A stretch of 64,000 nucleotides of DNA from Haliotis rufescens (lineage: Eukaryota): NCBI RefSeq assembly GCF_023055435.1, contig NW_025964372.1, forward strand, positions 33,108,001 through 33,172,000, written 5' to 3'. A program made the position numbers and the translations under genes. Shown here piece by piece: positions 55,874 through 63,475 of the stretch; the stretch's first letter is position 1; every line of letters begins with the position of its first letter. The notes below the pieces were generated by a model. The model was given only the letters and a program-made list of their open reading frames with translations. It searched no databases and was not told the DNA's origin.

Positions 55874-56833
55874 CGAGGTGTTCATTAAAGATTTCCCCTG
55901 ACCCACTTTCGATGGACCTAGTGGAATGAAACTTGGCATAGGTATTAGTCTTTCTCCACATAGGAACCACCAAGAGTTACGCACTTCCCCCATTGTTTTA
56001 TGCAACTATGGAGACCTCACTTGTGAAAGCCCTCATTCTGCGTCTCAAACCAGGACTTGACTTCAGAAATCAGTGTTTCATCATCTGTGAAACGTTTTCC
56101 CTTCAAAAATGACTTCATGGTTGGAAAGAGGTGGAAGTCAGATGGTGCAAGGTCAGGAGAGTAAGGAGGATGTGGAAGGATTTCATAGCCACAGGACCGC
56201 GCTTCTGTCTGGGCAACATGAGAGTTGTGTACTGGAGCATTGTCTTGCAGGAGACGGACACCCTTGGTCAGCATGCCACGCCTCTTAAGCTTGATAGCGT
56301 CCCGCAATTTCCGCAGCAGTGAAGCATAATAAGCTCCTGTAATTGTGGTACCCTTTGCCAAGAAATCCATCATCACTACTCCGTGCTGGTCCCAAAACAC
56401 CGTGAGCATGACCTTGCCTGCAGAGGGTTGGACACGTGCCTTCTTTGGGGGTGGTGACTCCACATGCTTCCATTGCATCGACTGAACTTTAGTCTCAGGA
56501 TCATAGTGATGGACCCATGTTTCATCCTGTATGATAAGTCTGTCAAAAAAGTTTGCCTGTTTTTTTTGGCACATGTCCAAAAGATCCTTTGAGCAATTGA
56601 CTCGTTCCTGCTTTTGGAAAGGTGTGAGCAACCTGGGAATCCACCGTGCAGACACCTTATGCATGTTCAAATTGTCATGGATGATTTTTTCCACAGACCC
56701 TACACTGATCTTGACATCTTGTGCTAACTGGCGAACAGTTATACGTCGGTCTGCCAAAATGGCGGTCTTCACTTGATGGATAGTGTCCTCATCAATGGCT
56801 GAATGGGGGCGACCAGGAATGGCAGCTGTTTCC
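55874..56833 (-). mobile_element. Mariner element, 3' part (DD34D transposase C-terminal portion plus TIR)
   Basis: TA|CGAGGTG end at 55872-55880; WIPRLL, QDETW, QDNA, YSPDLAPSD; premature TGA at 56017-56019 then in-frame GLHSCIKQWGKCVTLGGSYVEKD* to 55945. Confidence 0.92.
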
Positions 56834-58195
56834 CAAACCAAAACAAAAGTCGCATTAAGCATAGTACTGTGTGTAATGGTTTGACCTACTTTCTAAGATA
56901 CCCTTATTTCTCTCGACCACACACAACCCTATGTTGATTTTGTATATCTGGTTACAACTGAATTATATATATCAGGGTTGTTTAAAATGATACCTTGCGA
57001 CATTTGTTTAAAAAAAGTTGTATTTTGGTCGTACTTTGATATATATCGAAGGTCCATTACTGCATGTTTGTTTGAACTGACCTTGAAAGGGATTTCAGCA
57101 AGCACCCGTAAAATGGTTTCCAGGTAGCTAGTTACACCGTAGTTATCTTTTCCTGTCGATATTGAGAGCTCTTTGAAAAAATCACTGCGATTGGTGTAAA
57201 ATGCCCGCCGTATTTCAGTTTTGAATTAGACCACCCAGTCCACATCCAGTTAATATACATTTAGACGAGCCTCGTTTGGGATCCAGCACATGCGGCAAAG
57301 ACAGGCGAGCGGACGAGAGAAATATTATCTGCTTTCAAAACATTTGGTTAGTTCATTTTTATCACATTTCAGTATATAAATTTACATAACATGTCAAGGT
57401 CCAATTGGATATATGCAAAGCTTTATTTACTGACTTTTGCGAAGAAATATGACAAGTGTAAATGTTGAGTCGAATGTGGGTTATACCATTGTGACAAGGC
57501 GTAGGTGACGAAGGTTTAGATAGGGGCGATAACTCTCATTTGTTTACATAATTGTATAAATCAAAGTTATTTGCTGGGCGAAAATAGGCCTCCTTGACAG
57601 TCTCTGTTGCCCGTGCTGAGCCTAAATCCAATACACGAATCGATATAGTCGTAATCGTGACTTGTCTATGGTAAACTAATGTTGTTCTCAAACACTTTTC
57701 TAACTCAAAACAACAAATATAGCCCCATTTCAATTTGCCATGTTAACAGTGGATAATCTGAACATCAGTAGTGTTAACATATATATATTGATGGTTTTCA
57801 GTACATTAATTATACTTCAGGAAGTGTTAAACATTTGTTGTGAAATAGCATTTGGTAGATCTATCTATCTTATATCAACAACAACTGCTGAAAAACACTT
57901 AAAGTAGACAGGATAATGTTAAAATCATAATACACACACAAAAAAGGACCGATATCTTGAAATGCTTTTTATCTCAATTCTCTACAAACCCTTTCTCGCA
58001 AAGACCAAAGTGACATGTTTTTACCTACCACTTTGTTGAATCATATTTTATATTGTTCTCATAAATAGTAGAGCCAAAACTCCCAATATGAAAAACATAA
58101 GTAAAATTCAAGTTATTCCCATTTTTTAAATGAATTTGAAGTTCAAACTGTTTTCAAATCGTTTATATTGTAATGGTTTCACTTTGTCAGCCAGA

Positions 58196-58900
58196 ATGCC
58201 TCCAACGCTGAGGGAGAAACAGAACCTTGATTACCTGAGACTCAACACTGGGCCGTCATTTAGGCTGCCGAACCCATGTACACCAAAGGAGAAAGGCTGG
58301 AGAAGTTCTCAGCTTTTTTATGTAAAGATTGTCGATTCTAAAACTGATGCAGATGGAACTGATTTGGTAAAGGTCCACTACATTGGGTTTTCCACAAAGT
58401 ATGACCAGTGGGTGAAGGCATCTGCCACTGTAACAAGGTCATCCCTTATCAGCAGTGACCCAAAAGATGTTTTTCTTTTTAATGTCTTGTCCTTGGTGAA
58501 GGACAATCTCACTGTTTCCAGAGGGGTGGATTCAAAGGTTGTTATACGGTTTCCAATAGCATCTCCAGATGTGAGCACCCCACTCACTGATATTGCCCGA
58601 AATGTTTCACCAAAGTCCAGTTATGTAAGACATGAGTTCAGGTTCAATGATGTCCATGGACCAGACATCTTATTTGGAAACGATTGGTGGTACAGAATTG
58701 TTAACAAAGCAAATGATTTTGCTTATGTCAATAGGGAAACAGTTTTGTTTGGTTACTATGAGCGAAAGATGCGTGAAGAGTACACCCTGAACAATGAGCT
58801 CAAGCTTGCTCATAGAGGTTTTATGTTTTTCCTCAGATTTGTCAAGGAAAAGGGTAACAGAAATGATCTGTGTCTCTTACGGTGCATACTGAACAACTGA
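58196..58900 (+). CDS. Chromo-barrel (Tudor-knot) domain protein, ~234 aa, transposon-associated
   Basis: FYVKIVDS....LVKVHYIGFSTKYDQWV matches the MRG15/Esa1/ARID4-type VHYxGWxxxxDEWV motif; probable start MPPTLR at 58196 after a pyrimidine tract + CAG (ORF open from 58130); remainder of unknown function. Confidence 0.75.
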   Translation: MPPTLREKQNLDYLRLNTGPSFRLPNPCTPKEKGWRSSQLFYVKIVDSKTDADGTDLVKVHYIGFSTKYDQWVKASATVTRSSLISSDPKDVFLFNVLSLVKDNLTVSRGVDSKVVIRFPIASPDVSTPLTDIARNVSPKSSYVRHEFRFNDVHGPDILFGNDWWYRIVNKANDFAYVNRETVLFGYYERKMREEYTLNNELKLAHRGFMFFLRFVKEKGNRNDLCLLRCILNN

Positions 58901-59165
58901 ATGAACATGTGTCGATTTCCCTGCCCTGAAGCTGGTTGTGAATCCTAACTCAAGAAAGCATTTTTATCTACTCGCTTACATTTCACAACAGCTCGTTGAA
59001 ATCTGCCCACATTTAACAAAATACATGTTTTGGACATTAACTTACTTGAGACAGATTTTAGGAACAAACATTTGATAATGTTGTAAAATAAGTTTGAAAT
59101 CTTGAATTGCTATAATTTGCCTTTGAAGGAAGATTGTTTTTACTGCACAGTGTTTCAAGAAAGCT

Positions 59166-61484
59166 TTGAATGTATCTGTATTATATAGCTTAGGTATGAA
59201 TTGGCCACCCATTGTGTCTCTGTTCTATTGTGTTACATACTGCTCAATCATGCCACTTAACAACCTGACTAGGAGATCAGGAATGACTGGCATATCAGAT
59301 GTATTTAATGTAAGTGTATCAAAACTGACACTTTTTCAAGAATTTAAGAGATTAACACCGGTGAAAAACACATTTTCACCAGATATATGCAATGAAATAA
59401 TAACTTTTGTTTGCAGACAAAATAAGATTGACTGCAGTACTCTTCACTATGGCAAAATGTCATCTACAATGGCTTCATATTTGAAAAAGCTTGTTTCAAA
59501 ACATGATACAACCAGACGGAAGGGTGGGAAGCAGTATAAGACTCTGTTGGGGGCATGGGAGAAGGAACAATATTCCTTCAAAGTATTTGTGTCTGAACAC
59601 AACATAAAAACATTAAAATCAAAATTGTTAAAAAGCATGTCTTATCTTCACAAGTACAAATCTTCTGTTAGGAAGGCCAAATCCTTACTTTTACAAAATG
59701 TAAATCTAAGGAAAAAGGTTCAATTGCTATCCACAAAATTGTTAAATGTACAACAAGGAAACTTGCTTTCAAGTGTGTCCAATAGACGCTCATTGAAATT
59801 GCATTTTCCTAATGGGGAGGTGTCCAGGTCCCAACAGTATAAAAGGAAACATATGATTGTGAGAGACTGTAAACAATCTTTAGCATTTTTAGACAGATAT
59901 GAGCTTGAACCTATTTCAGTACAAACTCTGGACAGTGAAGGAAGGCAAATCCAGATATCTATGAAGGAGAACATGGTCAAAGAAACCGTTCCTCCTGAGG
60001 TGGAATTGAACAAAGTTGTTTATGTGAAAGATTCAGAAGGTATTTCAAACAAGGCTTACCATGAACTATCAATGATAGTGCCTACCCTTCCAAGATCACA
60101 CAAGGTTCTTAAAAAAATCAAGGAATGCAACGAAAATGTTTTACTTCATGACACACCATATCCAAGCTTTGGGGTTCAGCAGTCTTTGAAAGAAAGACTC
60201 ATTAGCTGTGTTTCACAAATTCTTGAAATGAAACATGACACCACAAACATTTTACAAACAAAACTTATTCGTGTGAAACGTACAGGTGATGGAACACAGT
60301 TTGGGAGAAGGAGAACTTTTATCAATTTTGGGTTCACAATACTAGATGATATGCTGTGTACTTCAGTAAAGGGAAACCATCTGTTAGCAGTATTTTCTGC
60401 CAAGGAAACTTATGATTGTGTTTCAACTGCTCTTTCTCAAATTATTGAAGAAGCTAAGGACTTAGAATATATTCATCTTGATGGTGTATGCTTTCAAATC
60501 AAGTTTTATCTGGGAGGGGATTTGAAATTTCTCAATATGATCTCTGGAATTGCGTCCTGTTCATGTAAACACAGTTGTCTGTGGTGTAAATGTTCGGCTT
60601 CAGACAGACACGATACTACCTTGCAGTGGTCAGTGACTGATGTCAACCATGGGGCTAGAACAAGAGAGGAGATCACTGAGTTGGCCAGAAAGAAATCACA
60701 AAATTTGAACTGTGTCCACACTCCCCTCTTTGATTTTATACCTCTCTGGAGGAGAGTACCTGACATGTTACACCTGTATCTTCGTATTTCTGATCAACTG
60801 GTGAAGCATTTGATATCAGAACTCCGGTTAATGGACAACATTGCCAGATGCACCAGTATTTACATCAGAGGCAAGTGCTCTAATGTATCAAAATTTGAAA
60901 ATTTTGTTAAAGGATTGGGAGTTGATTTTCAATTCAGAAATGATAGGGAGTCTGGTAGGTTCACGTTTAGAGATTTTACTGGTCCTGAGCACAGGAAAAT
61001 TGCAGATAACATAGTCTTTGCTGATTTCATTCCCCAACATTCCAAATTACAGTCGATATCTCTGTTGTGGAGTGAACTGAAACATATTTATCATCAGCTT
61101 CAAGAAGAAAGCTTTGAGGAGAGTGAAGTTTTAGCTCTTGATGAGAGATGTAAAAGGTGGGTGGCCACTTTTGGACTTGTTTACCAAAGCAAAGATGTGA
61201 CGCCTTATATGCATATTTTGGCATACCACATCACAGATATGCTTAAGATACATGGTAATTTGGTGACATTCAGCCAACAAGGATTTGAAAAGTTAAATGA
61301 CAATACAACTAAATGGTATTTTCGCTCTACTTCTCATAAGGGCAGGGAAGCTCTCAAACAAATCATTCTGAAACAGAATAGGCTTGAATCCCTTGAATGT
61401 TGTAAAAGAGTTGTACTGAAAGCAAAATGCTCAGTGTGTGACAAGTGTGGTCACAATAAACGGTCATGTGGCCTGAGTGACTGA
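59166..61484 (+). CDS. RAG1/Transib-like DDE transposase with C-terminal CCHC zinc knuckle (772 codons; true start uncertain)
   Basis: Motifs in RAG1 core order: RVKRTGDG (D1), YLGGDLKFL (D2), CLWC, PDMLHLYLRI, TPYMHILAYH, FSQQGFEKLND (E); terminal CSVCDKCGHNKRSC. Confidence 0.8.
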   Translation: MNVSVLYSLGMNWPPIVSLFYCVTYCSIMPLNNLTRRSGMTGISDVFNVSVSKLTLFQEFKRLTPVKNTFSPDICNEIITFVCRQNKIDCSTLHYGKMSSTMASYLKKLVSKHDTTRRKGGKQYKTLLGAWEKEQYSFKVFVSEHNIKTLKSKLLKSMSYLHKYKSSVRKAKSLLLQNVNLRKKVQLLSTKLLNVQQGNLLSSVSNRRSLKLHFPNGEVSRSQQYKRKHMIVRDCKQSLAFLDRYELEPISVQTLDSEGRQIQISMKENMVKETVPPEVELNKVVYVKDSEGISNKAYHELSMIVPTLPRSHKVLKKIKECNENVLLHDTPYPSFGVQQSLKERLISCVSQILEMKHDTTNILQTKLIRVKRTGDGTQFGRRRTFINFGFTILDDMLCTSVKGNHLLAVFSAKETYDCVSTALSQIIEEAKDLEYIHLDGVCFQIKFYLGGDLKFLNMISGIASCSCKHSCLWCKCSASDRHDTTLQWSVTDVNHGARTREEITELARKKSQNLNCVHTPLFDFIPLWRRVPDMLHLYLRISDQLVKHLISELRLMDNIARCTSIYIRGKCSNVSKFENFVKGLGVDFQFRNDRESGRFTFRDFTGPEHRKIADNIVFADFIPQHSKLQSISLLWSELKHIYHQLQEESFEESEVLALDERCKRWVATFGLVYQSKDVTPYMHILAYHITDMLKIHGNLVTFSQQGFEKLNDNTTKWYFRSTSHKGREALKQIILKQNRLESLECCKRVVLKAKCSVCDKCGHNKRSCGLSD

Positions 61485-62814
61485 GACAAATTGTAGTGGG
61501 CCATTTGTAGGAGTATATCACTACAACAGGAACTGTTTAATGCAGTATGACAGCTTAGCACTAGTGCTTCCTTGAGTGTAGATGCACTTCCTCTTCTGTC
61601 TTGTTGAGGACATACTTTGTTAAAAAAAGAATGTTATATACATTTGTGATACTTTGTCATTGTTCATCTTGAAACAAGATGAGTGATAATATTTCTGATA
61701 GGTTTTATTGGTGCAACAAGTGTAGGTACACTTTGTGATTTATTTGACCAAACCTTAGTTTATCATATCTGATAAACCTTGTTCAGGGAACTAGTTTCAG
61801 TTTAAATATGTTTCAACAAGTTTTGCAACTGAGCTCCATATGTTTTGTTAAACCGATTTCACTTTTTTTAAAAACACATTTTACTTATGGGCAAAGACTG
61901 TTTGTATCATTGTTTTGCCAGATTTGGAAAGCCCTATTATTTTGTGTGTAACGCTTTGAAGGCATCATTCTGTGTCAAGGTTATTTTTAAAGCCTATTAA
62001 TGATTATGACGTGCTTAAACCTTGATAGGGTGAACGAGTTGTAGTTCTTCAGACATGTTTTGGTATCGATTAATAGCCAAATATGGACGTCTTAGCAAGG
62101 TTGTATGCACGCCAAGCTTATGTCTGTACCAGAAGATAATGTAATTTTAAAGAGACAACTCCTCAGTTCAGATGTTTCACATTCTCATGGCACTTACAAG
62201 AAGGAATATATTTTGGGATTCATTTTGCTTTTAGTTGTATCAAAATTTACCCCAAAACGTAAACTTTGAGGTGTTAGTAAAACAGCTTTTTCAAATCCAG
62301 ATTTGTTTGCACCTGCTGGATGAATAACTTCTGCTGTAGTTGTATGAATCAGAAGGAAATGTTATGTTGAAGTAGCCACTGACATTACACTCAGTCTATC
62401 AAACTGTTATTGATTTTATCATTGAACCTATGAGGAAGTGTTTGAGAAATAATTAGCTTGAAAGATGTATAGCCTAAATGACTAAAGATAAGGTCTTTAT
62501 ATGAAAAGGCATAGGGATATCAACCGGAATCAATACATTTTGCATCAACTCCATGTATGGTGGCATTCTTTTCACTGAAATAAATGTTTACCTTACATAA
62601 TAGATAAAAACTTGTCTCTTTTTTACCTCACTATGGTACAGTAGACACCCACCCACCCGCTCACTCTCACTCACTCACTCACACAGCCACTCAGCCACAC
62701 ACACACACCGCTGAAGATAACATTGTCTTCAAGACATAAACCTTACAACCCCCAGTGACCAAATGGAACACCCCACTTCACACGAGACTGTTTCAGGTGA
62801 CATGTTTTCACTTG

Positions 62815-62983
62815 CGGATGTCCGACCACACTTGAACTGGCCATGCCAGTGTTTAACAACGTCATATGATGGGGCATCTTCCCCATAAGTTGCTTTCATT
62901 TCATCGAAAGTTTCTCTTGGTGTGCGACCTTTCAAATATAAAAACCTAATCACTGCTCGGTATTCTACTGGCTCAATTGTCAC
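62815..62983 (-). mobile_element. Mariner element, 5' part (HTH N-terminus of the split transposase)
   Basis: EYRAVIRFLYLKGRTPRETFDEMKATYGEDAPSYDVVKHW..QFKCGRTS; matching TIR not found upstream. Confidence 0.9.
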
Positions 62984-63475
62984 ACCCTACTCGATCATAA
63001 CACCTGTAAAAGTGGTAAGATTAATAGTTCGGTGCTGCAAATTCAGATATAAGCCATAGATACATGTATCATTACACATAGTACATAGAGACGTTCGCTT
63101 GGTACTTGCGTGAACCAATCATCAATCTCGTGTGTGCGACAGATGTTGTTAGTGACATGGTGTTATTATTGATAACACTCAAGCATTTACGTTTCATATA
63201 GGAACATGAACGGACAAAGGACTGTCACGGTCGCTGCTACAGTATTCGTTTATGTTGTCACCACGCTATTTCTTCTGGAAATACTGTCGAGCTTGGTTTA
63301 TCATGACCGAAATGATTATGGCACTCGCAGGAAAAGGATCGTTAAGCAATGGGACATGTGAGTACCATGTCGCTTTATTGATTGGTCCTCATGTTGACAG
63401 ATGCAATTGTATCAAAATATACTCACATGCATAAGAACAGATACTTCTGAGATTAAACGTAATATCCCGAGTGAA

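Follow-up and report, generated by a model that had tools for sequence, protein, structure and literature searches.

A two-gene mobile element of Haliotis rufescens with a RAG1-type transposase core and a predicted chromo-barrel partner protein

A mobile element with two linked genes

Near the right-hand end of a 64,000-nucleotide stretch of DNA from the abalone Haliotis rufescens (contig NW_025964372.1, positions 33,108,001 to 33,172,000; hereafter the window) lie two open reading frames (ORFs), ORF1 and ORF2, which an original prediction made from the letters alone had described as intact, co-oriented genes of one discrete insert, pairing a RAG1/Transib-like transposase with a chromo-barrel gene. 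Both frames are open on the plus strand (ORF1 at 58196-58900, ORF2 ending at 61484), and comparison with other copies within the same 1.33-Gb Haliotis assembly places them inside a mobile element that has inserted into a copy of a mariner transposon:

56834..62814, plus strand: whole mobile element, 5,981 bp, lying in a mariner copy, boundaries taken from sibling copies
58196..58900, plus strand: ORF1, partner protein, an open frame of 234 amino acids (aa)
59283..61484, plus strand: ORF2, transposase, an open frame of 733 aa counted from the ATG at 59283

The limits of this element are exact. Similarity to other copies starts at 56834 and stops at 62814, positions set by eight left and five right ends, and the copies whose similarity begins or ends precisely there lie on nine contigs (C556, C594 at 22.15 Mb, C124, C1, C112, C12, C24, C607 and C90). 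Since these edges are sharp and the flanks are unrelated between copies, the mobile unit comprises 5,981 bp and exceeds the interval 58196-61484 covered by the original prediction, whose discrete insert is thereby borne out. The empty target is also visible, as eight intact mariner copies run uninterrupted through the insertion point. The two parts of the split mariner gene are:

56017..56833, minus strand: C-terminal part (Pfam Transposase_1, 7.8e-25), which continues at 62815 in the eight intact copies
62815..62983, minus strand: N-terminal part, from the empty-site comparison; an ORF at 62729-62983 crosses from the mariner into the end of the element

Every other transposase of the region had been described as broken; the one neighbour that we examined is this mariner, and it was broken by the insertion of the element itself. 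The mariner family (in the window at 56017-56833 and 62815-63200, minus strand) is abundant and of very recent origin, with 428 candidates in a first look and 98-99% identity over a 300-bp probe in all 40 of the candidates that were scored.

Copies of the two-gene element range from nearly identical to degraded. A sister copy at C594:22153046-22159204 (loci L003 and L012) is 99.8% identical to the element and is interrupted within ORF2, at the equivalent of window positions 61353-61364, by a short repeat of about 167 bp. The same repeat recurs several times near the other copies and is found at the equivalent of window positions 67295-67461, 3.3 kb past the window's end. Further abalone copies are 97-98% identical and frameshifted, and several have lost internal stretches. 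Young cut-and-paste families usually look like this, and the presence of copies with both genes intact, together with a near-identical sibling, makes recent activity likely. A search of the element for long inverted repeats found none beyond about 12 bp. Its right arm contains a short CA-rich stretch (62646-62706), about 1.9 copies of a 20-bp unit, which matches many genomic tandem arrays.

The two genes stay together elsewhere. The abalone genome has 11 or more divergent loci at which an ORF2-like gene (50-62% identity) is preceded on its own strand, at a distance of 0.3-0.6 kb, by an ORF1-like gene (41-52%), and at one of these pairs (C556, 48.48 Mb) both frames are fully open. We also used an ORF2 profile to collect 79 loci from other, metagenome-labelled assemblies. 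An ORF1-family gene is present in 55 of these, always downstream of ORF2 on the opposite strand and 150-900 bp away, so that the partner mostly occupies the convergent position typical of RAG2-like (RAG2L) genes. The remaining loci are mostly contigs that end early, and a few hold the most divergent transposases. Two of these few, L107:3206-5695 (829 aa) and L108:1261-3831 (856 aa), are single-ORF relatives, 20-21% identical to ORF2, with no second ORF of at least 90 aa beyond the frame of the transposase; in place of the CCHC knuckle described below, their C-termini have weak matches of LEM- or SAP-like type that stay below threshold.

Two multi-copy lineages from this collection are units of 3,795 bp and 3,812 bp, with just the ORF1 and ORF2 genes between short inverted repeats. 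Across six lineages the two proteins have correlated pairwise distances (r 0.85, Mantel p 0.008), with ORF1 evolving faster than ORF2 (mean identity 25% versus 38%). Between abalone copies, the ratio of non-synonymous to synonymous substitution rates is as low in ORF1 (0.18-0.68) as in ORF2 (0.32-0.64). A further hint of linkage comes from one ORF1-like and one ORF2-like database protein that share a 5,831-bp Logan contig. As abalone loci, other assemblies, element boundaries, co-divergence and selection all agree, the two genes form a co-inherited unit, arranged in tandem in abalone and tail-to-tail in most other lineages. Fusion of the two proteins by splicing was considered and rejected: the sole apparently fused protein (H. 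cracherodii, 337 aa) is a gene model stitched together from pieces of a degraded copy.

The transposase and its partner protein

The features of ORF2 on which the following analysis draws are all on the plus strand:

59292..59750, plus strand: N-terminal alpha/beta domain (residues 43-143) and long helix (144-195), from secondary structure and confidence of the predicted model
59982..61421, plus strand: RAG1-type core, residues 273-752, from VIA-align and Foldseek on the model
60288..60290, plus strand: first catalytic Asp, D375, invariant in 33 of 33 sequences
60519..60521, plus strand: second catalytic Asp, D452, invariant and paired by HMMER with the RAG1 Asp of the GYDEK motif
60576..60587, plus strand: CxxC zinc ligands C471 and C474, invariant and paired with RAG1 CTLC
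61212..61229, plus strand: HxxxxH zinc ligands H683 and H688, at least 90% conserved and paired with the H...H of RAG1
61287..61289, plus strand: catalytic Glu, E708, at least 90% conserved and paired with the RAG1 catalytic Glu
61428..61469, plus strand: C-terminal CCHC zinc knuckle (C755, C758, H763, C768), kept in 28-29 of 33 members

Three in-frame ATGs (59196, 59250 and 59283) could start ORF2. Its 72 homologues, at 26-42% identity, come from echinoderms, molluscs and unassigned contigs, the named ones being from sea urchin, sea cucumber, starfish and scallop. In an alignment of 33 family members, D375, D452, C471, C474 and H536 are invariant and H683, H688 and E708 are at least 90% conserved; the motifs listed in the original prediction, including the CX2CX4HX4C knuckle, turn out to be conserved columns of this alignment. 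E708 sits 20 residues past the second His, the same spacing as in RAG1. Beyond the four zinc ligands, C476, C516 and H536 are also conserved and could form a second metal site. A second ORF2-like family in abalone, at 28-29% identity, has uninterrupted frames of 679-780 aa and no ORF1-like match nearby (C13:30303415-30537627, C246:1126397, C46:23425224, C113:8836091, C585:1163757 and C605:29074227); four of its copies lie within 0.25 Mb on C13, and the family may represent a further transposon lineage or a cluster of domesticated genes.

On its own, ORF2 matches nothing in Pfam, nor anything in the PDB by phmmer. With the family profile, the PDB search reaches zebrafish RAG1 (E 1.6e-4) and the amphioxus RAG1-like protein BbRAG1L (E 1.9e-4), a broader profile repeats both the match and its column alignment, and HzTransib is undetected by the family profile at the sequence level. 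A homologue search with the broadened profile reached no named RAG1, Transib or Chapaev protein. The residue-by-residue correspondence to RAG1 that had been claimed stands for D708, C727/C730, H937/H942 and E962, which HMMER recovers; the match of D375 to RAG1 D600 comes from structural superposition only.

A template-free AlphaFold model of ORF2 (predicted local distance difference test, pLDDT, of 84) was superposed with VIA-align and searched with Foldseek. Residues 273-752 of the model superpose on mouse RAG1 458-1008 over about 446-450 residues with a Z score of 28.4, and Foldseek likewise retrieves RAG1 (E 2.8e-16). The superposition spans the whole RAG1 core except the nonamer-binding domain, from the dimerisation/DNA-binding domain through the C-terminal domain. 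Z scores for BbRAG1L and HzTransib are 25.1 and 24.8, and the next fold, P element transposase, scores 13.7. The alignment to BbRAG1L continues into the CCHC knuckle (model residue 771, chain residue 1125). These results uphold the predicted RAG1/Transib core fold, and the model and profiles show ORF2 as a DDE transposase of RAG1 architecture, with modelled dimerisation/DNA-binding, pre-RNase H, RNase H (D375/D452/E708), zinc module and C-terminal domains.

The N-terminal 270 residues differ from RAG1, the core being preceded by a domain peculiar to this family and by a long helix. The long helix at residues 144-195, roughly 50 residues, is probably a coiled coil, judging from the model. A short helical segment within the N-terminal 270 residues may be the counterpart of the nonamer-binding domain; the proposed nonamer-binding-like helix is suggestive only, with a sub-significant HMMER stretch and high-deviation extensions in two structures behind it. 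Residues 1-298 contain no Cys or His conserved across the family, and neither ORF2 nor its family members have a zinc-finger Pfam match in this region. The zinc fingers of RAG1 and RAG1L (NZD, RING) and the Chapa domain of Chapaev are therefore absent.

ORF1 consists of two modelled parts:

58307..58450, plus strand: chromo barrel, residues 38-85, from family profile, model superposition and cage conservation
58451..58897, plus strand: C-terminal alpha/beta domain, residues 86-234, confidently modelled

The protein is 88% identical to a predicted Haliotis rubra protein, and an exhaustive search gave 131 representative relatives at E <= 1e-3, one of them a Holothuria protein. Many are about 220-235 aa long and align end to end at 30-36% identity. 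The ORF1 family profile matches the ARID4A chromo barrel in the PDB (E 7.9e-9) as well as Eaf3, MRG, MOF and L3MBTL, and 11-16 of 37 members match Pfam families of the Tudor-knot or MSL3_chromo-like kind; abalone ORF1 alone stays under the Pfam cut-offs for barrel families. In the AlphaFold model (pLDDT 88 overall), residues 38-85 superpose on RBBP1/ARID4A (Z 6.0, root-mean-square deviation 1.8) and MRG15 (Z 5.8, deviation 0.8) over 41-46 residues, so that the chromo-barrel signature noted earlier, followed by an unfamiliar domain, holds up. A conserved aromatic cage is typical of methyl-lysine readers. Positions 41, 62, 65 and 69 of ORF1 are aromatic in 35-37 of 37 members (His counted at 69), and by our reading of the alignment they correspond to the aromatic cage of MRG15 and form a predicted methyl-lysine cage.

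Within the C-terminal domain the family shares an invariant D174 and almost invariant W164, N170, G208 and F215. Comparison with known structures gave only weak and inconsistent matches for this domain (best Z 4.3-4.5), and fold searches with ORF1 showed no similarity to a known DNA-binding fold. Pfam and fold searches of the element's proteins likewise returned no kelch or PHD domain, in keeping with the original claim that the element has no RAG2-like gene of that type. The C-terminal domain is kept in all lineages. This includes a lineage that we call group B, in which ORF1 (L059:10130-10822, minus strand; copies L060-L066, L076 and L114) has no barrel.

Termini and target sites

The terminal sequences of the abalone element and of three related lineages are as follows:

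56834..56845, plus strand: left terminus, CAAACCAAAACA, common to nine copies
62803..62814, plus strand: right terminus, TGTTTTCACTTG (reverse complement CAAGTGAAAACA), common to five copies
Group A: left terminus CATATCAAAACC, right terminus as reverse complement CATATCAAAACC, a perfect 12 bp
Group B: left terminus CATGTCAAAAAA, right terminus as reverse complement CATATGAAAAAC
L070: left terminus CATGGCAAAATATTGG, right terminus as reverse complement CATGCCAAAACATTGG

The left and right sequences give the abalone element ends of the form 5'-CA...TG-3', and CAAACCAAAACA and CAAGTGAAAACA are equal at 9 of 12 positions. The common shape of all these termini is CA, four variable bases and a run of A (CA-N4-AAAA), with repeats of 12-16 bp and a T or an A as third base in six of the six termini examined. 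They recall the end consensus of protostome RAG-like (RAGL) elements, CACTWMCAAACKT (PMC7204232), and lack the C at position 3 that is invariant in recombination signal sequences and in Transib and RAGL ends (PMC1131882). Helitron-like ends were ruled out, as the termini do not fit them.

At 10 of 10 independent target sites in groups A and B, the element is flanked by the same base on both sides, and two insertions that landed in repeats have exactly one extra base when compared with their empty paralogues. None of the sites examined has a 5-bp duplication, and a hidden duplication of 2-8 bp in abalone was not consistently found over four pairs. Integration thus duplicates one base, or none. 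A one-base stagger implies strand transfer at two phosphates that lie almost opposite each other. In RAG and Transib, cleavage passes through a hairpin on the flanking DNA, a route that the element may or may not share. Spy elements, relatives of PIF/Harbinger with an unrelated transposase superfamily, provide a precedent for a eukaryotic DDE transposon with no or almost no duplication.

Placement in the clade and the role of ORF1

The best explanation of these observations, to which we assign a probability of about 0.6, is an autonomous, recently active cut-and-paste transposon of an undescribed two-gene lineage in the RAG1/Transib-CMC (CACTA-Mirage-Chapaev) clade, with ORF1 as an accessory subunit. 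The catalytic and zinc motifs fit this placement. ORF2 has the conserved DDE, C(2)C and H(4)H motifs, and CA...TG ends are found in the abalone element and the three related lineages, whereas the duplication of one base or none falls short of the 2-5 bp usual for the clade. EnSpm, Mirage, Chapaev, Transib and RAG1 all have a DDE triad together with C(2)C and H(3-4)H (PMC12730594), so the motifs alone do not place ORF2 with RAG1 and Transib over Chapaev-like relatives. Of the separate RAG1-related two-gene lineage first proposed, the two-gene lineage stands and the specific kinship to RAG1/Transib stays tentative: the motifs are clade-wide, and the nearest language-model neighbours carry DUF1280.

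These neighbours raise the alternative that ORF2 is a Chapaev-like or other deep CMC enzyme, its likeness to RAG1 arising only because the solved structures of the clade are those of RAG1, RAG1L and HzTransib. To our knowledge no CACTA or Chapaev structure exists, and those three are the only ones solved, which means that a fold search cannot tell the branches of the clade apart. DUF1280, the Pfam counterpart of Chapaev, falls in one cluster with RAG1 (PMC3985635); the DUF1280/Chapaev clusters score 0.92 and 0.90 among the language-model neighbours of ORF2, ahead of the RAG1-domain clusters at 0.88. The short duplication is also nearer to the 2-4 bp of CMC elements than to the 5 bp of Transib, with Nozomi-type Transibs at 3 bp or TA (bioRxiv 10.64898/2026.08.26.747230). 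Sub-threshold Pfam matches point both ways, with DUF1280 (PF06918) below cut-off in one of the 33 family members (0.0093) and RAG1 in two (best 0.0016). Six-frame genome scans with Pfam RAG1 and DUF1280 gave no match and are uninformative, as the controls were silent too. Against a Chapaev-like enzyme, RAG1 and RAG1L are direct hits of the family profile, the superposition takes in the entire core from the dimerisation/DNA-binding domain to the C-terminal domain, and ORF2 does not have the N-terminal Chapa zinc finger that defines Chapaev (PMC4411706; also bioRxiv 10.64898/2026.01.24.700457). We regard this alternative as somewhat unlikely.

Comparison with individual systems shows where the element agrees with and departs from its relatives. 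Chapaev and other CMC elements share with it the C(2)C and H(4)H motifs, the CA...TG ends and the DUF1280 language-model clusters, and differ in their Chapa zinc finger and 2-4 bp duplication, neither of which is seen here. Transib elements such as HzTransib have the same core fold (about 410-450 residues aligned for HzTransib and RAG1), DDE and zinc module, and CA...TG ends that have an A-run at about position 8, and their autonomous copies are compact (3-4 kb), like the relatives of our element. They differ in having a single ORF and a CAC heptamer-spacer-nonamer repeat (PMC1131882), whereas here the A-run follows directly after the first six bases. The CAC termini and 5-bp duplication that are hallmarks of Transib and RAGL are both broken by this element.

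Like our element, RAGL/ProtoRAG has the RAG1 core fold, the catalytic and zinc residues and, at the BbRAG1L tail position, a C-terminal zinc tail. A second, faster-evolving gene lies tail-to-tail downstream of the transposase in most of the lineages analysed here, as RAG1L and RAG2L are arranged tail-to-tail and RAG2L evolves faster than RAG1L (PMC7204232). The convergent two-gene layout occurs in the 55 loci and, between inverted repeats, in the 3.8-kb units; the abalone genes are tandem, unlike those of RAGL. In both systems the partner has a module of the histone-reading kind that is dispensable in some members. The partners themselves are different, a kelch propeller with a PHD finger in RAGL and a chromo barrel with an alpha/beta domain (about 230 aa) here. 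RAGL further has an N-terminal zinc finger/RING, CAC ends and a 5-bp duplication, whereas our element has no such finger, CA(T/A) ends and a duplication of 1 bp or none, and the structure-based identity of ORF2 to RAG1 is about 13-14%.

As an accessory subunit of the transposase, ORF1 would act through both of its parts. Its C-terminal domain would carry the essential contact, either with the transposase or with transposon-end DNA, and the barrel could tie the complex to methylated histone tails and so bias the place or timing of cutting and insertion. The PHD finger of RAG2 is dispensable and lies outside the RAG2 core, and by analogy the C-terminal domain and dispensable barrel of ORF1 may be likened to the RAG2 core and PHD finger. 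The loss of the barrel in group B supports such a modular view of ORF1. Chromovirus (Ty3/gypsy) integrases with a chromodomain and LEDGF-guided lentiviral integration offer another possible, purely functional analogy, since they too combine a DDE enzyme with a domain of the methyl-lysine-reader type, which in their case steers integration by chromatin state; their reader is fused to the enzyme or is a host protein, whereas here it is a separate gene of the element and the enzyme is RAG1-like.

Several points weigh against the accessory-subunit transposon as we have set it out. Group B, whose ORF1 has no barrel, still has at least seven copies that are about 99% identical, which makes the barrel dispensable for mobility, and MOF/MSL3-type chromo barrels have nucleic acid as their ligand in place of methyl-lysine. 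Contact of ORF1 with ORF2, DNA or histones is something that we purely infer; a complex prediction for ORF2 (residues 40-772) with ORF1 scored 0.00 in a run made without controls, which speaks neither for nor against binding. The one-base duplication is present in only one of four abalone pairs and missing from the other three, and at the mariner target three bases were replaced by two, with no clean duplication. Finally, ORF2 belongs to the RAG1/Transib-CMC clade and has a RAG1-type core, but its branch may be that of Transib and RAG or a Chapaev-like or other CMC one.

A stronger version would make ORF1 an obligate, RAG2-like cofactor. In this case the C-terminal domain would activate or position the enzyme, the barrel would license cutting and insertion on methylated nucleosomes, and the one-base stagger would follow from active-site geometry, giving a second, independent design of RAG1-type nuclease plus reader. 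We hold this to be doubtful.

A different division of labour is suggested by the CMC branch, where two-protein systems exist: En/Spm (CACTA) needs both TNPA and TNPD. ORF1 might similarly be a TNPA-like DNA-binding assembly factor that binds near the ends and helps to pair them, its barrel contacting nucleic acid and not histones. It would suit this role that what is conserved in ORF1 is its C-terminal domain, not the barrel, and that Pfam names Tudor-knot the "RNA binding activity-knot of a chromodomain". The four cage aromatics, conserved family-wide and typical of methyl-lysine readers, argue otherwise, as do the lack of similarity of ORF1 to known DNA-binding folds and the abalone element itself, in which no subterminal repeat arrays were found. 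As far as our tests reached, ORF1 is unrelated to TNPA, and we judge such a function improbable.

ORF1 could instead be directed at the host, for example by competing with MRG/HP1-type readers, thereby delaying silencing or keeping the chromatin of the element open. A reader-type barrel with an intact cage would serve this purpose, and evolution faster than that of the transposase is expected of a host-interaction factor. RAG2L also outpaces RAG1L, so that the rate does not discriminate, and the barrel-less lineage is still multi-copy; we give this possibility little weight. Least credible of all is that ORF1 is a passenger, a captured fragment of a host gene without a role for the element: chromo barrels are common in hosts and DNA transposons do capture host fragments, but ORF1 is kept in two gene orders and in lineages down to about 20% identity, is under purifying selection, co-diverges with the transposase and is, beside it, the only gene between the repeats of compact 3.8-kb elements.

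In the open literature searched, with Repbase and Dfam outside its scope, we found neither a chromodomain or non-RAG2 second gene nor a 1-bp duplication reported for Transib, RAG1-like or Chapaev elements. Judged on that literature, what is new is a two-gene lineage of the RAG1/Transib-CMC clade whose partner gene is unrelated and whose integration geometry is unusual. The origin of V(D)J recombination still leaves the dependence of RAG1 on RAG2 to be explained, with debate over whether Transib captured or lost a RAG2-like gene, and the kelch/PHD protein RAG2L is the only partner we know of so far for a transposase of the RAG1 fold. With the same gene pair in many other genomes, a second, independent design that joins RAG1 to a chromatin reader may exist. 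If this is true of a widespread sister system, a two-subunit design with a reader-type module would be a recurrent solution for this class of enzyme. The system offers an unrelated chromo-barrel partner, a tail-to-tail layout and a natural reader-less variant, and would give an experimentally tractable comparison, one that could address the need for the partner, its contacts and a possible steering of targeting by the reader. A duplication of one base or none, in turn, implies a strand-transfer geometry unreported for the clade in the literature searched, and this bears on the geometry of RAG's own transposition.

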